In this document: positions 41,485 to 50,811 of the stretch, piece after piece | Layout of the letters: each line of letters opens with the position of its first letter | Position numbering within the stretch: position 1 is the first letter of the stretch | Assembly: GCA_020536535.1 (NCBI GenBank) | Contig: JAHLWZ010000853.1 | Span: forward strand, 1-64,000 | Direction of reading: 5' to 3' | Source: Pelomyxa schiedti | Taxonomy: Eukaryota > Protista > Evosea | Length of the DNA stretch: 64,000 nucleotides | Translations under genes and position numbers: made by a program | The notes under the pieces: generated by a model | Database searches by the model: none | The model's input: the letters and a program-made list of their open reading frames with translations, nothing else | What the model was told of the DNA's origin: nothing

Positions 41485-41719
41485 GAAAAAAGCACCCAAA
41501 ATAAAGGACCCTCACACATTATTTCTTTTTTTTTTTTTTGTCTGTTATGGCTGTGACCTACCATCCCCAAACACAGCTCCTTGTGCACTCACCCACGGGA
41601 GTGCAGAGTACCCAACAGGGACACCCCTTCTCGTACAGGCAGGTTCCGGAATTTCAACTGACCTGTTATGTGAACCTTTTTCTCCTTCGTTCAGGTTCCC
41701 AGAACACAAGGAAAAATCC

Positions 41720-43616
41720 ATGTCGGGAGCGGGGCCGTCTTTGGGCAGCGACGAGGGCGCGAACGTGCCGCCGCCGTCGCAACCTCCACCGGGCTACGAC
41801 GGGCGCGACGACGACGTCGCAGTGCCGGTGGCCCACCACCATCACCACCACGATCACGAGCACTACGGGGCCGAGTCGCCGCAGACGCCTGACGGTGGGA
41901 GGCCCGACGAAGGCATGGTGAGGGCCGACGAGGAGAAGAGAGGGAGTTATGGGACGGGTGGCGGCGCTTCTGGGGCACCAGTGAAGCAGCCGCTGAATTC
42001 CGAGAAAGTGCCTCTTGTGGAGAAGCCACGTGCAATGAGGCACTTCAAGCGATCTGTATTCGGGTCTGTCTGATTATTGCGGTCATTTCAAATTTTAGAA
42101 ATAACACACACACAAAAAAAAAACAGATGGTTGTGCTTTGGCCTTGTTTGGAGTGAGTCATTTCTCTCAGTACTGTTATCAAATAGCTAACTCACAGCAC
42201 AGATATTCTAAACACTGCTGTCTTCGCAACACTGTATGAACCAATGCTTATAATTAATAACCACTTATAACTTGCAACAAGCACACAACCTCCCTGAAAT
42301 GGAAAAAAGGTATCCAAAAATCTTGCAGACAATAGATGAGAACTATGTGTCTGACTTCAGCACTGCCAACATGATTACCACGCTCCTCTCATCTTTCCTT
42401 CTGCCACCTCTTGGGAGCCTTGCTGACCAGATGAAGCAGGTCTGTTTGTTGTAGTCTTTCATTTCCATTCTCTTCGAACTTCCCCCTTAAAGGCTGCGTA
42501 ATTAGGTCAGGAGATGGATGTTTGCCACTGAATTGGTGGGAATTGCCCTGTGCTACGTGTTTCTACCCATGACGTACCTCAACTCCCCAACAGCACAGAT
42601 TGTTCTTGCGCAGATCCTCTACACTCTCACATTATTCTTCCTCCGAGTGGCAGTCATGGACAACAACGCACTGTTAAATTGCTTCCCTGATGCACATCGA
42701 ACGACTCTGTCCCTTCTCACCAACTTCATTGGTTTTGGTGCTGCTTTCCTGAGCCTCTTCATCCTTTTCCTTCTCACCAAGGGTGATGATCCTCCACTTT
42801 CCAATGTTGCTCTTGTTTTCATCTTCGCACTTGTTGTGACCGTCATAGCACTCTTCACATACCTGGCTCCTTCTGATGCAGTTCCTCTCCGTGAGAAACA
42901 ATCCTTCGGCAAAGTGGTTATCAAGTCATTTCAAAGAATGGGAACAACTTTTCTGGCATTGAAGAATAAGCCCGAGTACCGGAAAATCGCTTACTTTCTC
43001 CTCGCATACCTGTTCTACTCTACATCTGGAACAGTCTTTACGATCTATGTGATCACTTTTTTCATTGACCTTTATGGCGTGGATACAAATCAAAGCGTTG
43101 AGATTAATATGTGTTACTTGGTTTGCATTCCCTTCCTCAACGAGTGAATCCGCTAATTTTCTGCAGCTGGCCAGTTTCTTTGGAACTCTAATTGGGATGC
43201 TCTACAAGAAGTTCATTGGTGATCATGAAATTTGGACTCTGCTCATCCAGAACTGTCTTTTCTTGGTCTTATTTATTATTCTGTTCCTCAGTTATATATG
43301 GGACTGGGGGATTTATGCCAGTCTTGGAATATCTCTTGGAATCAGCCTGAATTATGCATGGAATGCCGGTCTCTCACGAGGCTACTTATTTAAAATCACA
43401 CCCGGGGACAAACGCGGCGAGTTCAGCGGGTTCTACAGCACATTCACATACCTTGGAATCAGTATTGTGAGCGGCGTGTTTGTCATAATGACCAACTGTG
43501 ATGTTGGAACCCAGTGGCTTCTTCCACTCTTAGCCTCATTTTCACTGCCCTCCTATATTTTCTTCTTCCTGTTGATATGGACACAGAGACAAGAATCCAA
43601 AAATACTGTCAACTAA
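41720..43616 (+). CDS. MFS transporter, Atg22/UMF1-like
   Basis: PPLGSLADQ, NNALL, YFLLAYLFYS, LSRGYLFKITPGDKRGEFSGFYS (Atg22/UMF1-type SRxxxxxxxPxxxxxEFxGFY). About 12 hydrophobic segments. Confidence 0.75.
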
Positions 43617-43800
43617 GCCCAAATAAATAAACCCAACCACACACCAACCATCTCACCACGTTACACTGCAGGAAAGAAAGACTGAAACGGCATTCATTGA
43701 ATCACATTTCACCTGAATCTCTAGAGAAAGAATCAATTCTCGACTTTTGTTGTTTTTTTTACGGAGTTCGGTTTTTTTTCCCCGTTTTCGTTTCTGATTG

Positions 43801-46800
43801 ATGGAGGCGATTAAAATTGTGGCCGTAGGTAGGAACAGTCTCCACCACCTTTAAAGCATTTTGCGTCATAGTGATGCAATTGTGCAGGTGATGGTGCAGT
43901 TGGCAAGACATGCATGTATATTAGTTATTCAACAGGGGCATTCCCTTCGGGTCTGTCAGATTGCCTTTTGTTTTAATTCCATTCTTTTTGGTGAACAAAA
44001 TAACTTACGTGCCCTTTTGGGGTTTTTTCCCTGTGGCTCCATGACAGAATATGTGCCCACAGTATGTTCCCTTCCTTTCACTCTTGGTCTTAACTGGACT
44101 TCAGGTTTTTGACAACTACGTGGTAAATGTAACGATCAATGGCAAACCTTGCAGCGTTGGATTATGGGTTAGTGATCACTGTCTTGTACCTTTCCCTTAC
44201 CAAACAAAATGTAGGATACAGCAGGCCAAGAAGAGTATGATAGACTCAGACCCCTCTCGTATGCAAGACTGAGACAAATAACGTATTGAACCGAAAAAAG
44301 CTTACTGTTCCATCAGATATGCTGGCACCTCGTGCTTCCTCGTTGTTTACAGTATTACAAACCGATGGTCTTTCAACAATCTGTTCAAGTGGATATCTGA
44401 GTTTCAACACTATTGTGGAGCAAACCAAAAATTTGTCTTGGTAGGAAATAAATTAGATTTGGAGCACCTTCGACAAGTACGAGAGTTATTGTGAACTACT
44501 TAATTACTCTTCAAGTTAGGTACCTACACAAGAGGCAAGGGATTTTGCTGACAAATATGGGGTCCCTTTCTTTGAAGTATCGGCGCTGACCCAACAAAAC
44601 CTTAAAGTTGCATTCGATGAAATGATAAGTTGTACTAACTGTTTTTATATTTGAAAATTAACAAACCCTAGAACTGGCCTGCAGAACAGGGGGAGCCCCA
44701 AGGCGGCCACGTAAGAAACCATGTTGCTTATGCTTTGCTCCCCCACCAAAAAATGAGAAGCCTACTGACATGCACCATGACTCTGTAAGTTAGTTCACTT
44801 ACACTGCATAGTTTCTTATAGAAATAGATTTGGTGTTTGGAAGTGTCTCCCCCTTATTTGTACAGTGGCGGACGCGACAAGAAGCTATGGTGTTGGGATA
44901 TTGCATCAGGACGATGTGTAGCTGCTTTGGAAGGCCATACTGGTCAAATATTTCAAATTGTGCGCTTACACGAATTTTCCCTTGCCAACTCTTCTAGATA
45001 GCAAACGACGTGTATGTTTTCACCTGCTCTTCTGATGGCAGCATAAAAAGATGGTACAATCTAGGTGATACTGCCTTTGTGGAGATTGATCATTCACCTT
45101 GATGCTAGGATATTCCGGTGAAATGAACCATAGTGATTATGCCAACTGCATGCAAATCGTTGGGAATACACTATTTTCTGGATCCAATGACAAAACGGTA
45201 GCATCCTGGGATAAGGGTACATGCGCTCGAACTAGAACCTATGTCGGTAGTAGTGCAGCCATAAATACACTACAAGTGGTACGTACCAGGCAAATTGACT
45301 CCTTCTGATTCTTCTAGGTGGGGGATTTCATATGGACTGGCTGTGCTGATGGAAAAATACGAGTATGGAAGTTGAACTACCCCGACTTGTATGACGAATT
45401 TGAAGGTCATACTGCCTCTGTAAACCGTAAGCTAGGAGAGTTTTGAAGTAGTATTGTTTCTCACCATTCTTGTTAAAAAGAGATGTTACAGTGTCATGGA
45501 GATGGAACAGTTGTGGTATCTGGTGATGCAGCGGGAGGCCTTAGGGTTTGGAATACGTGTGTTAGTTTTCACGTAACTTCATCTTATGATTTACCAGAAC
45601 CGAACCCAGTCTCCGGCACACTCTAAATCCGCATAATGAAGCAATTAATTATATGTGTGTCAGTGGGAAAGTACTTTACACAGCTTCCAGAGGTTCTGTT
45701 CCTTCGCTCCCCTTTTCCAATGTCTCTTCTGTAGTAATCTTGGGTTATATCTTTTATAGATAGGACAGCTCGAGCATATAAACCACATGTAGGTCAGCTT
45801 TTGCGCGTTTTCCAGGGACACACTGCTACTGTGAGATCCTGTGGTGCTGCTCATGGACTCCTTGTCACGTACTTCCCTTAAAAACAACATTATTTAGTTT
45901 TAACCCGTTAAAGGGGTGGAACAGATAAGACTATAAGATGTTACAAGCCAGATGGAACGATAAAATGGGCATACGATGGACACGAAGATTGTACGGTGCA
46001 GACTTAATTTCGTAATTTTAACCCTCCCAGATATCAACCGAATTTATGTAAATTCGGACTCTGCGTATACAGCATCACGAGATTGTACTATTCGAAGATG
46101 GAGACTGAAGGATGGGAAGCTATTAAGAGTATTTTTTTTTTTTGGGCAAAGACACCCCTGTGAACTTTGAAAGGTGTTCGCAAATACCAGAACAAGAATT
46201 TCAAATGAATGGACCCCACCATTTGAAATTATTGTTGGGCTTGTAATGATATTTGTGGAATTTGTGCAACTCACTGCCTTTGCGTTTTCATCTGGAATAC
46301 CGTGGTGGGCAAAGCATCCACTTATTAAAATCGCATCACCTTTGCAGCTGAATTTTTCATTTATCGATTGGTCGGCATTTTTTCTTCCACTGTATGTCTC
46401 TCAACAACCTTTCTTTCTATCTTATCTCCAATAGGTACATATTATCTTCCATTGGCATTGTACTATTTGAAATCGCCTTTGCGTATGTACTTAATGCTTT
46501 TAAAAAGTGGATTGGAGCTAAGTTCTATTCAAGTTTCAGCAGCAGAATCGTGGGGAGTGACGATTACGCCTTGAAAAAAAATTTGTGGTATCCATCGTGT
46601 TTCATCTGCTGGCTAATGTCCACAGTTTGCTTCATACCAGCAGTTCGAAGCATAATTTCTGTAAGAATCGACACTAATGTAAACTCACCACTGAAGATTT
46701 TATCTTGTATTTTGTAGGCCCTGCCCTGCTATGATTCCGTTATCCCCAGCAGTGATATTACGTGTTGGAGTGGCGCCCATATAACCTTATTCATCCTGGC

Positions 46801-47560
46801 GTTCCCGTTAATTGCAGGTTTGGCATATTAGGTTGGCTTCTAATCCATCCGTGTTTCATTAGGGTACCTCCCTCTCAGTCTTCGAATGTCCACTGTTGAT
46901 GGCAGTCTATCCAGAGTCGCAGTGTACATGTGGAAAGATTGGTCTAATGATAAGCCTGACACAAGGCGCCTTCATATTTTGTCCCACAGATCATTAGCAT
47001 CAAATCGCATGTTTCTGTTGATCAACTTCTTCACCACTGTTGCCTCAGTATTTCTTGGCTACGCAGGTATTAATTTAACTTCTTGTTTGAAGAGTAACGA
47101 ACACAGAATCCGATGTAAGTACTTCATCTTCAGGTGACGGGACACTCTCTCACAAAGATTGGGGTCTCCTTTTGGCACTTGTGGCAGTACTTATTGTGTC
47201 TGCTTTGTCGTTATCTCTTTCCGTTTTAAAGGTAAAGATATACATATATTGATAACTTGGCTCGGCCAACAAATAATTGTGTAGAGTCCGCCCTACTACA
47301 ACATCCACATCAACTCCATGAGGTTATCACTTCTTCTAACGGTTTTTTGGACAAGTGTGCCACATCCTTTGTTTCACATTTTAACTTTATCTTCTGTGAT
47401 AATAGATTGCTGTGCTTTGGCTACACTCATTGTAAATGATACCTCCAGTAAAGTGACGAGCGTGGTTCATGTATTGGGGTACCCAGTCGTTATATGTATT
47501 GGAATTATTTTGATGCGGATACGAGCCCACTTCATGGAAGTGAAAGAAAGAAAGATGTAA
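43801..47560 (+). CDS. Fusion protein: Rho/Rac-like GTPase + ~8 WD40 repeats + ~8-TM membrane domain
   Basis: IKIVAVGDGAVGKT, EYVPTVFDNY, LWDTAGQEEYDRLRPLSY, GNKLDL, EVSA. No stop after RRPRKKPCCLCF. Phase-0 GT-AG joins into WD repeats (MHHDS|IWCL..WCWDI) and from the last WD into TM exons (KLLR|VFANTR..IIVGLVMIFVEFVQLTAFAF). Confidence 0.8.
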
Positions 47561-47618
47561 CCATTCATCCCAAACCGAATCATCACTCAATATCCTTGAA
47601 AAACCTAACAGGAATCTA

Positions 47619-48132
47619 ATGCTTTACAACTCCATTGGTGTTCCATCCCGTCTATTTAGACTTCTACCGGGTTTGGTGCCCCTTCTATAAGAATAACCTT
47701 CACATATTCACAAACTAAGTCACACCAGGACATCCAAATCAACTTAATGACGAAAACTATGGAGCACCTCCGTCCGGAATTGCAATTATCCACTGCGCGG
47801 CGTGCAACGTAGCAGTTCTGCGGGGATTATGGGACGAGCACATCAACTCGGTCAAGCACCACAACCACACCCACCCAATGGTCTCCAACATCAGCAATGC
47901 ACCTTTGGTTCCGCCGGGAGATGGAATCCAACCACCCGAAGTGGAATTCGAGATGGACGAGGAGCTCAAGACGTGGGAAAAATCTGGGAAGCGAAAGCTG
48001 GGGGTCTGGGAGGGCAGCCACTGGGGAAAAAAGGCTGAGCAAGAACTGGCTCAGTGGAGTGCTACTTTGCAGGATGACAGAAACAAAATGGAAGAGGAGG
48101 CCAAATACATTGCACCACAGGAATTGTCCTGA
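47619..48132 (+). CDS. Small protein with U1/matrin-type C2H2 zinc finger (start exon tentative)
   Basis: The frame upstream of ORF 47878 reads IHCAACNVAVLRGLWDEHINSVKHH. An in-frame stop at 47716 requires a 5' exon; ATG 47619 with intron ~47638-47728 fits the phase. Confidence 0.5.
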
Positions 48133-48267: not shown

Positions 48268-50811
48268 TTAGAGTGATACAAATATTTTTTCTCTCCACAT
48301 TATGTAGGATACTATGACCCACGCAGAGACACAAGTTACATTCTCCAACATTTTCCACCAGTGTGTTGGATCAGGAAGCTTGAAGGCGAACGGGAAGTAA
48401 CCACTAAAAACCTGAAAAGAGCGTAAGTTCCGGTGTGGAAAAGACAAGAAAAGGGATTACCTCAGAAAGGCAATACATGGATATCGAATTCATTCCCATG
48501 AATAAGAATGGTTCTCCTTCCCATAACTTCAGTACATCTTGCACAATATAGCACACAGTAAGGCAAATGTTCGCTCCTCCAGCAAGTGCTAAAACAAAAG
48601 ATAGGCTCCACAGGTTTTTGTTTACTGGAATTGGACCGCCATCCCTCCGGCCCAGGCAAAGAGCAGTTGCAATAGAGCCAAGAACAATTCCCCATATCAA
48701 CCATCTGCTTATTCGTTGGGTATCTGTTTGGAATGAATCAGGTTTTTTTTTATCTGTTGTGGTGTTGTACGATTTTTGTAATGGGTGAGAATGCGCCCAG
48801 CCTGCAGACCCAAATAGCACATTAAAAACGATGTCAAGTACCCAAGGATGCCCTCTGCAAGAAATCAGTGTTTCGTGAATGAGAAGAAATTTGCCTGGGT
48901 CATAGGGACCAGTAATATAAATTAACCTAAAAAAGGTTGGATGTTACAAACAGAAATGAAAAATTTATACTTGCAGGTAGGCCATTGATAAATCTGGGAG
49001 GGAAAACATTTGAGAAGGAAACAACGAAAGGGAGAAAGCGTACATGGTCTTTTCCCAAGATAAGGCGATCAATATATCCAGCAGCTCCGCCAGTACAATT
49101 CTTTTTCATCCCTAAATCTCCCAATAGGCCGCCAGCTCCCAAGTAGCCTCGGCCACAGCCTGGAACATCCAGAAGAAAAGTAACCAGTAGCCAAATCTTT
49201 CGGGTTAGTTGTTAAAGAAGAAATGAAAATTCGTGAACTCACCGTAACAAATATAAGAATGATTAACCACTGCAGGGCATAAGGTAAAATATCGGAAAAT
49301 GGCTTCTCAGTTTCTGAAGGTGCTCTGGCAGATTGTTGAAGGTTCAGAGGTTCTGTTTGTGTCTCCCCAAGCAAGGGTTCCGATTTCTTTTTACGGAAAG
49401 ACAGTGGTAATGCAGGAACAAAAACAGCAATGCATGACACTACAAAGAATGTCAAGCCAAATCTCTGTAGGACACCTGGTATTCTCCAGTTTTTGTAATC
49501 ATATCTACAAAGGATTCTCAGTGATTTTACTGTAGAAGAAACAGTACCCTGGGAAGAAATTAGTGATTGATCCTGATAGTGTTTATCTTACCATTATTCA
49601 GAAATAGGCCTAAGCAGAATAACTTCAATGATCGGATAGTAATTTTTTTAAGTAACTCCAGGTAGCTTGCCTTTCTTCTTCTGAAGGACAGAGCCATGGA
49701 TGTGCCCATTAGAAAAACAAACCTACAATTGTCGGAGGGGAGCAGAATCGTTGGTAGTAATACCAAGGGAAAACTAAATCTGCTACTGTGAGTCCATTCC
49801 ATATCTTTTTTTGGAGTAAGAACGAAACTCGGGCAAAAAACCTCTTACAGAGTGGTGCATATACCAGTACCCTCCCCCTCCAGCATTAACAAATATCATA
49901 ATTACAAGTGAAATTCCTCTGTGAAAAAACCCATTAAAAACCCATTATTGGGAAACTCAAAACCTAAATGTATCAATGCTCCCAATTCTGTCAACAGCAG
50001 GTGCAGTATCAGAAGGGGATCCTGAGGAGATGTTTACATATTTATTGCCCACCAACCTTGTTTTTAGGTACCTGAAGTGGAACGCTTCCGTTTTATCCAG
50101 TAGGTTCGGAAAACTAAAAATGCTTGCCATAACACAAAGAGGAAAATTAACCCCTGCCAATAGTGAGGAAAGGCTTGAAAGGATAGTGGTACCAACAAAA
50201 ATACAATCTCAGGAATCCAATTTTTGTGAGGTGAAACGTCTTCAGTTATAGTCATCTCCCACGAACTGCTGTTAACAAATAGGGTATAAACACCCCACTC
50301 TCCAAAGTGATACCTAATGGCATAAGAACAGAACTAATATTAAGGCAATGGACCGTATAGAGCTACGATAGTTTTCATCATTGTCATACACTGAGATATT
50401 CATTCCAACGCGCGTTTGTATAGGGTGAAAGTACTACAGTGATTGAGTGATACGAGCAAGATTTTTGGAAGCATTTCTCCATTATTCGGCTAGTAATAAA
50501 CACTATGAGCTTAGACTCACATCTTCTGTTTCACCTGACACGCGCCTCTTCAGTAGCTCAGGCGAGCAATTATAGCACTCATCCAGAACGTTGTAGTAAT
50601 GTGTTATACCCCTTCCCGACACATACACCCGTACCTTTATTTTGATTTTGGTTTGTTTTTTTTAAACCATATTATATTAATACAATAATTGAACCTTGCA
50701 AGTGTCCATGGGATAGTCTGTGGGGTCTGTCGTGTTGGGGTCGGGCAGAACTCCCCCCAAGACACCCATAATTGCCGCTCCCCATAGCAACGCAATCCCT
50801 GTGCACTTCAT
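48268..50811 (-). CDS. HGSNAT: Heparan-alpha-glucosaminide N-acetyltransferase family membrane protein
   Basis: [95 protein letters not shown]. Confidence 0.92.

Follow-up and report, generated by a model that had tools for sequence, protein, structure and literature searches.

A Rac-type GTPase fused to a WD40 propeller and a remotely TmcB-related eight-helix membrane domain in a small protist protein family

A single gene joins four domains in one polypeptide

We describe a gene at positions 43801-48132 (forward strand) of a 64,000-nucleotide (nt) stretch of Pelomyxa schiedti contig JAHLWZ010000853.1, referred to below as the window. Judging from its sequence, the gene product is a single 1010-amino-acid (aa) polytopic membrane protein and a member of a small protist family with a common layout: a GTPase domain (G domain) of Rac type, a basic and Cys-rich linker, an eight-bladed WD40 propeller, eight transmembrane (TM) helices of TmcB type, and a C2H2 zinc finger. 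The P. schiedti protein KAH3745933.1 (P0001), whose database label is only "Rac1 protein" and which a search with exon 18 alone retrieved, is the exact translation of our corrected splice model.

Starting from the ATG at 43801, the splice model comprises 27 exons separated by 26 GT-AG introns of 38-97 nt (median 45), and a single open frame runs through the G domain, linker, WD40 repeats and TM helices. An earlier sequence-only reading of the window had proposed just such a single-gene fusion, spliced canonically into one frame; the database protein, the uninterrupted frames of two relatives and the colinearity of others (see below) bear it out, and we reproduce the phase 0 of both junction introns and the placement of the His of the first WD repeat in exon 8. 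That the WD part has no start of its own was slightly overstated: an in-frame ATG (M194, at 44770) precedes this His, yet it is lacking in four relatives (P0011, L005, L006 and L009). The same reading ended the gene at the stop codon at 47560, which we reject since it sits inside an intron and the exons that follow are conserved; the true end is 48132, so that two exons, carrying the zinc finger and the tail, had been missed. It had also skipped a 51-nt intron at 46483-46533.

Spliced RNA contigs from the same study as the genome confirm the introns at 45869-45913 and 45991-46030. Transcripts across the two domain junctions had been suggested as a check: the WD40-TM junction is crossed by one RNA contig (depth 3.8), whose first 9 nt (46120-46128) are followed directly by 46174, and the GTPase-WD40 junction is not covered. 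A further RNA contig, 47754-47959, covers the zinc finger region. DNA contigs from two single-cell runs, which may be the source of the assembly, each span the fusion locus in one piece, and we reject an assembly chimera both for this reason and because relatives repeat the layout. These runs depart from the assembly at two places, by a 4-nt deletion at 43723 (X2), which lies before the ATG, and by an A>T substitution within an intron at 43975 (X3); the coding sequence is unaffected by either. We likewise reject a free, prenylated Rac isoform, as no splice or intron-retention product terminates in a CaaX motif: retention of intron 8 leads to an early stop and a product ending in DSVS, and the full-length protein ends in QELS.

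The architecture recurs in paralogues and in other organisms

A paralogue on P. schiedti contig C731 (L004; P0011 = KAH3758879.1, 1061 aa) has the same four domains, the same junction intron, and an intron at the place of the 51-nt window intron. Over aa 18-943, colinearity extends to the Pelomyxa-like Logan contig L007, which has short introns and a GC content of 39%. Two GC-rich JGI contigs carry the fusion in genomic DNA almost or entirely free of introns: in the intron-poor L009, G domain, WD40, TM and finger occupy one genomic frame of 1054 aa with only two introns, both at the 5' end, and in the intronless L006 all four domains lie in one frame with a single TAG, at a column where relatives have Gln. 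The GTPase-WD40 junction intron stands at the same position in L004, L005 and L007 and is absent in L006 and L009. Because relatives repeat the layout, L006 and L009 without junction introns, the fusion is independent of the splice model.

Identity to the window protein across relatives is 47-60% in the G domain, WD40 and finger, 33-59% in the TM domain, and 9-17% in the tail. For the two JGI contigs it is 33-34% in the TM domain, 47% in WD40, 50-53% in the finger and 9% in the tail, with 57% for the G domain of L009. A more divergent WD40-TM copy is found on L010 and L011, with its 5' end beyond the contig. An intronless member on ENA contig ERZ27233564 k141_843156 (L008) has its frame shifted near 420 and broken by a TAG at 894; it appears to be a degraded copy or an assembly error, and was used as alignment pieces only.

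The third P. schiedti paralogue (L005, contig C955, 8578-5724 on the minus strand) departs from this pattern at its N-terminal side. Its WD40-TM-finger unit is preceded by a degenerate G domain with a linker of five Cys, and further upstream a divergent G domain and a canonical Ras domain are joined by a run of 11 Cys inside one exon. Splicing can thus bring as many as three small-GTPase domains in tandem (divergent, canonical Ras and degenerate) into one frame, but joining Ras to the third G domain requires an assumed intron of 37 nt, and one of the other introns is of GC-AG type.

No members from Entamoeba, Dictyostelium, animals, fungi or prokaryotes turned up in searches of limited reach, and a first metagenome scan with full-length patterns returned none. 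Four GTDB matches were rejected as homologues, since they are common WD40 proteins of bacteria that have no G domain and do not match the TM part, and P0004 and P0005 were discarded as chance matches.

On contig L006 (JGI 3300048575, Ga0498942_018047), three adjacent genes each contain one in-frame TAG (at 1651, 5058 and, on the minus strand, about 560), one of them at the Gln column conserved in relatives; the fusion gene itself ends in TAA. The neighbours of the fusion are presumably a Sas10/Utp3-like gene and a nucleotide-sugar-transporter-like gene. This distribution hints at a protist code in which UAG is read as Gln, with sequence error as the alternative; our literature search found no paper on such a code in Archamoebae.

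The G domain retains the switch surfaces of Rac and is followed by a tail-like internal linker

All G motifs are intact, as the sequence-only reading had noted (G1 GDGAVGKT, G2 YVPTVFDNY, G3 DTAGQ, G4 NKLD, G5 SAL), including residues G12, T35, W56, Q61, NKxD and SAL. The domain scores 182 bits against Pfam Ras versus 79 against Roc, and its best solved relative in PDB is human Rac1 (1.9e-50), with an alignment gap at the Rho insert, a helix of about 13 aa after G4. Across the fused G domains, 17-18 of the 18 residues of switch II and 12-14 of the 15 of switch I are identical to a free Pelomyxa Rac (17 and 12, respectively, in the window copy), compared with 34-46 of the remaining 101 positions. 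Near-identical switches beside a divergent remainder would be predicted for a domain that continues to bind the regulators and effectors it has in common with free Racs.

In a tree of Rho-family GTPases, one branch (99/97) separates the five fused G domains from 17 other Pelomyxa members; the alignment omits the insert columns and uses sequences pieced together from BLAST matches, and the placement of the root is uncertain. The tree fits a single origin of the fused G domains and is not proof of it.

Free Pelomyxa Racs end in a basic stretch followed by GGCxxx and the stop codon. The linker of the fusion protein resembles that tail, yet it is internal and therefore cannot be prenylated, and the protein has no CaaX motif at its C-terminus. 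The Cys cluster of the linker has been retained or enlarged (counts in four proteins range over 3-10 Cys; L007 has a single one), which suggests palmitoylation.

An eight-bladed propeller and a conserved zinc finger flank the membrane domain

The AlphaFold2 model of the propeller (predicted local distance difference test score, pLDDT, about 70-92) contains 32 strands, making eight blades. Its best Foldseek matches are designed eight-bladed propellers (Tako8), followed by Fbw7; among natural folds Fbw7 and Rsa4 lead, with Cdc4 and beta-TrCP lower, and at 18-25% identity these matches reflect blade number only. A G-beta-like scaffold, as the sequence-only reading had it, finds no support in the strict sense, since G-beta is a propeller of seven blades with an N-terminal coiled coil, and the WD40_Gbeta score is 56 bits against a cut-off of 150. 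Conserved Arg and Asn residues of the propeller (R215, R414, R440, R493, N277, N357, N400 and N479) lie on what, by the usual WD40 register, should be its ligand-binding top face.

The zinc finger region (aa 890-921) shows 50-56% identity in all aligned relatives and matches Pfam weakly (AKAP95, OrsD). No F-box or BTB domain appears among the 25 best Pfam families shown, no COR domain in the Pfam scan or AlphaFold2 model, and no EF hand in the Pfam scan; WD40 follows directly after the G domain.

The membrane domain is remotely related to the TmcB-type module

Eight hydrophobic helices with alternating basic loops point by the positive-inside rule to an N-in/C-in arrangement, the same in the four proteins tested; in P0012, seven helices exceed the threshold. 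In the predicted topology the G domain, propeller and finger are cytosolic, a conserved Cys pair lies outside, and the outer loops are short (8-33 aa). Conserved polar residues stand within the helices (E538, Q541, N721, N793, W805 and T806). The domain differs from a seven-TM receptor in having eight helices and a cytosolic N-terminus, and fold searches with its low-confidence model gave no significant match.

No Pfam, PDB-sequence or, on that model, fold match was found, including to any channel or transporter; Foldseek against PDB yielded no usable match, nor did VIA wide, where the best Z of 7.4 is at background level, or the atlas, where TM did not exceed 0.42. By language model, the TM domain lies closest to unnamed membrane proteins of oomycetes and Preaxostyla and to a PF06011 cluster of TRP-like type (0.90 and 0.87, at the level of leads). 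PF06011 itself gave no hidden Markov model match to the protein up to E 10 and none in the genome, a weak negative.

The sequence-only reading had likened the TM motifs to those of TmcB-like proteins, and profile comparisons in both directions, with 12 TPR_TmcB loci of the P. schiedti genome and 38 control tiles, uphold this as remote homology. The family profile matches 8 of the 12 loci (at least 4 bits), at one segment, TM6-PY[YH]..N-TM7, versus none of the control tiles. Reciprocally, a TmcB profile scores three relatives at 18.3, 12.2 and 7.6 bits, values that none of 250 local shuffles attained. For the window protein the score is a marginal 3.4 bits, a level reached by 5 of 250 shuffles. 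The first helices are also alike (LEIVQLFTFAF in TmcB-type and VEFVQLTAFAF in family proteins). The TM domain is thus a remote homologue of the TmcB-type TM module, the relationship covering mainly TM6-7. Pfam searches found no TPR_TmcB domain after the TM module in the protein, and a profile search at 230-740 aa for stand-alone relatives of the module gave one fragment only.

The P. schiedti genome contains 24 TPR_TmcB matches (for example on contigs C818, C630, C1038, C970, C806 and C923; L024-L041), and by its sequences has a large TmcB-like membrane protein family that shares the motif APY[YH].W..N.LK. In Dictyostelium, tmcB is tied to macrocyst formation and cyclic AMP (cAMP) signaling (PMC12750705).

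Feature coordinates and neighbouring genes

Upstream of the fusion lies an expressed and spliced multi-pass transporter-like gene (41600-43616, forward strand), whose RNA contig stops at 43674, about 130 nt short of the fusion ATG. Downstream, a convergent gene (about 48300-49900, minus strand) has spliced RNA at 48410-48458; it carries a motif that we take to recall heparan-alpha-glucosaminide N-acetyltransferase.

Table 1. Positions in the window of the fusion gene and its parts
Feature	Position	Strand	Basis
Whole gene	43801..48132	+	27 exons, 26 GT-AG introns, 1010 aa = KAH3745933.1
Rac-type G domain, aa 1-164, exons 1-8	43801..44682	+	Pfam Ras 8e-54; best PDB match Rac1 1.9e-50
Polybasic, Cys-cluster linker, aa 165-197, RRPRKKPCCLCF	44683..44781	+	Internal; putative relic of a Rac hypervariable tail
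Eight-bladed WD40 propeller, aa 198-511	44782..46179	+	AlphaFold2, Foldseek, Pfam WD40
GTPase-WD40 junction intron, phase 0, within WD repeat 1 (HHDS/IWC)	44785..44827	+	Splice model
WD40-TM junction intron, phase 0	46129..46173	+	Spliced in one RNA contig, 9-nt overhang
Eight-helix membrane domain	46216..47556	+	Helix and topology prediction; remote TmcB-type TM homologue
TM1 with EFVQL	46228-46284	+	Within membrane domain
In-frame intron, 51 nt	46483..46533	+	Matches KAH3745933.1; paralogue L004 has intron at same place
PPYY..N motif of membrane domain	47288-47314	+	
TM8	47459-47515	+	Within membrane domain
Intron holding apparent stop 47559-61	47557-47611	+	Corrected splice model
Exon 26, cytosolic linker	47612..47670	+	Corrected splice model
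Exon 27	47729-48132	+	Carries zinc finger and tail
C2H2-type zinc finger C-x2-C-x8-W-x2-H-x5-H, aa 896-921	47785..47862	+	Conserved; in exon 27; RNA contig 47754-47959
C-terminal tail and stop codon	47863..48132	+	Unconserved, 9-17% identity

Candidate roles of the fusion protein

The most probable origin of the fusion is a Rac gene that, deprived of its stop codon and CaaX end, became joined to a WD40-TM-zinc finger unit. As its likeliest role we infer, at even chances, a prenylation-independent, membrane-fixed Rac signaling platform, in which the TM domain, aided by palmitoylation of the Cys linker, would stand in for geranylgeranylation. RhoGDI binding depends on isoprenylation (PMC3641396); the fused Rac would not be extractable by RhoGDI and would act only on the membrane to which its TM domain is sorted. 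GTP cycling would be under the cell's ordinary Rac guanine nucleotide exchange factors (GEFs) and GTPase-activating proteins, the GTP-bound form would recruit Rac effectors and so bring about local actin or membrane remodelling, the conserved Arg/Asn-rich face of the propeller would bind cargo or a partner protein, and a cue from outside may be relayed to the switch by the TM module.

Several observations weigh against such a platform. No RNA contig covers 43748-45617, so no transcript shows the GTPase-WD40 splice in P. schiedti. The Rho insert helix, which like the zinc finger had escaped the sequence-only reading, is missing in all five fused G domains and present in free Pelomyxa Racs, and the insert is a secondary effector site (PMC3641396). 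The alpha3-beta6 half of the window G domain scores highest against Rab27/Rab11; the same half of L009 still scores highest against Rac1, and drift after loss of the insert is the simplest reading of the Rab-like score. Eight conserved helices are more than an anchor requires. The paralogue on C955 has Ras and degenerate G domains, not Rac, and Rac output is therefore not essential to the family. As for the structural models, that of the TM domain is of low confidence (pLDDT 60), and the full-length model (predicted template modelling score, pTM, 0.41) is uninformative on contacts between domains.

A channel or transporter gated in cis, with FeoB and, loosely, Miro as precedents, is a tentative alternative: the eight-TM module would conduct ions or a solute, the G domain would open or close it, and the propeller and finger would serve regulation or assembly. 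The TRP-like cluster among the language-model neighbours, the polar residues conserved inside the helices and the ability of G-domain identity to switch between paralogues are all consistent with this. Against it stand the failure of the Pfam, PDB-sequence and fold searches to match any channel or transporter, the lead-level standing of the atlas scores with the weak negative for PF06011 in the genome, and an effector-facing switch surface nearly identical to that of free Rac, although a switch acting only within its own protein could do without such conservation; moreover, TmcB-type relatives are linked to cAMP signaling and not shown to conduct (PMC12750705).

We regard as unlikely a self-contained receptor, in which the TmcB-type module would sense an outside cue and activate a small GTPase of its own chain in cis, the G domain being exchangeable in evolution. 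G-domain identity does vary within the family, being Rac in most members and Ras plus degenerate GTPases in one. A membrane receptor had also been raised by the sequence-only reading; the predicted outer loops are short, and searches gave neither a ligand nor a fold match.

A membrane-anchored trafficking or turnover adaptor seems quite improbable. Here an Fbw7/Cdc4-like propeller would capture phosphorylated or acidic cargo at an endomembrane, such as that of a symbiont or food vacuole, and the G domain would time its release. The eight blades with Fbw7 as top natural fold match, and Arg/Lys/Asn conserved at the usual WD binding-face positions (by the usual WD40 register), would suit an adaptor, but the fold match mirrors blade number only and Pfam revealed no F-box or BTB domain. 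Finally, that two or three adjacent genes are joined only by annotation or splice model is very hard to credit, for the uncovered first junction, the ATG just ahead of WD repeat 1 and the early stop upon intron 8 retention are set against uninterrupted genomic frames in L006 and L009, a junction intron common to four intron-rich copies, a retained-intron product without CaaX, RNA across the WD40-TM junction, and DNA contigs of two runs that span the locus.

Comparison with known systems

The fusion protein shares individual features with several known systems, of which RhoBTB/RacA, Rheb-TM, Miro and Roco come nearest without sharing all of its defining traits. Roco proteins (LRRK2-type) likewise combine a Ras-like G domain and WD40 in one chain, but in them Roc invariably precedes COR and is accompanied by kinase and LRR; the fusion has none of these, and its G domain is Rac-like. 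Miro proteins, once classed with Rho, are GTPases integral to the membrane that contain two G domains, and the tandem G domains of L005 are reminiscent of these; they have EF hands and one C-terminal anchor, and unlike the fusion with its eight TM helices, they lack WD40 and the eight-TM module. TmcB-like proteins (TPR_TmcB, PF25474) share the TM segment PY[YH]-x4-5-N-x-LK[IV] and a similar E..Q first helix. In these proteins TPR_TmcB follows the TM module, with PAS or cyclase domains further on, whereas in the fusion the GTPase and WD40 precede the module and a zinc finger follows it.

RhoBTB and Dictyostelium RacA also have an N-terminal Rac-type G domain, no CaaX, and scaffold domains in the same chain (PMC8305917), but these are BTB domains, with neither WD40 nor membrane helices. 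Two Pelomyxa Rac-like proteins (L053 on C965, L060 on C1006), with a shortened insert, a proline-rich extension and open frames of about 780-795 codons, are probably RhoBTB/RacA-type; they fall outside the fused clade. The Rheb-TM paralogue of SAR (stramenopiles, alveolates and Rhizaria) has transmembrane segments in place of the prenylation motif of a small GTPase (PMC5869587), but it is a Rheb with four TM segments and without propeller or zinc finger. Entamoeba EhRho1 is an archamoeban Rho-family GTPase without the Rho insert that binds a formin and drives actin (PMC3641396, PMC8305917); it is free and isoprenylated.

The sequence-only reading knew of no described protein with this architecture. 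Literature searches, mostly outside subscription journals, found no published description, and the main text of the P. schiedti genome paper (PMC8887013) does not mention GTPases; the architecture is, however, that of a small family and not a one-off. Each domain belongs to a known type, and GTPases fused to membrane segments are not without precedent, but the combination is apparently undescribed.

Implications

As a rule, GTPase switches of the Rho family are free proteins that carry a prenyl group and are shuttled by RhoGDI; RhoBTB, Miro and Roco are the large forms known. The family described here, hidden in databases under "Rac1 protein", fixes Rac with intact switches into an eight-pass membrane protein that carries its own propeller, a layout kept across organisms whose membrane domains share only 33-34% identity. 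It further gives access to the TmcB-type membrane module, matched more than 20 times in the P. schiedti genome, as a possible output, GTP loading of the attached G domain, would be measurable in one polypeptide. The receptor reading, if true, would mean a route from membrane to small GTPase that dispenses with both heterotrimeric G proteins and a separate GEF, and would provide the first assayable output for the widespread, uncharacterised TmcB-type TM module.

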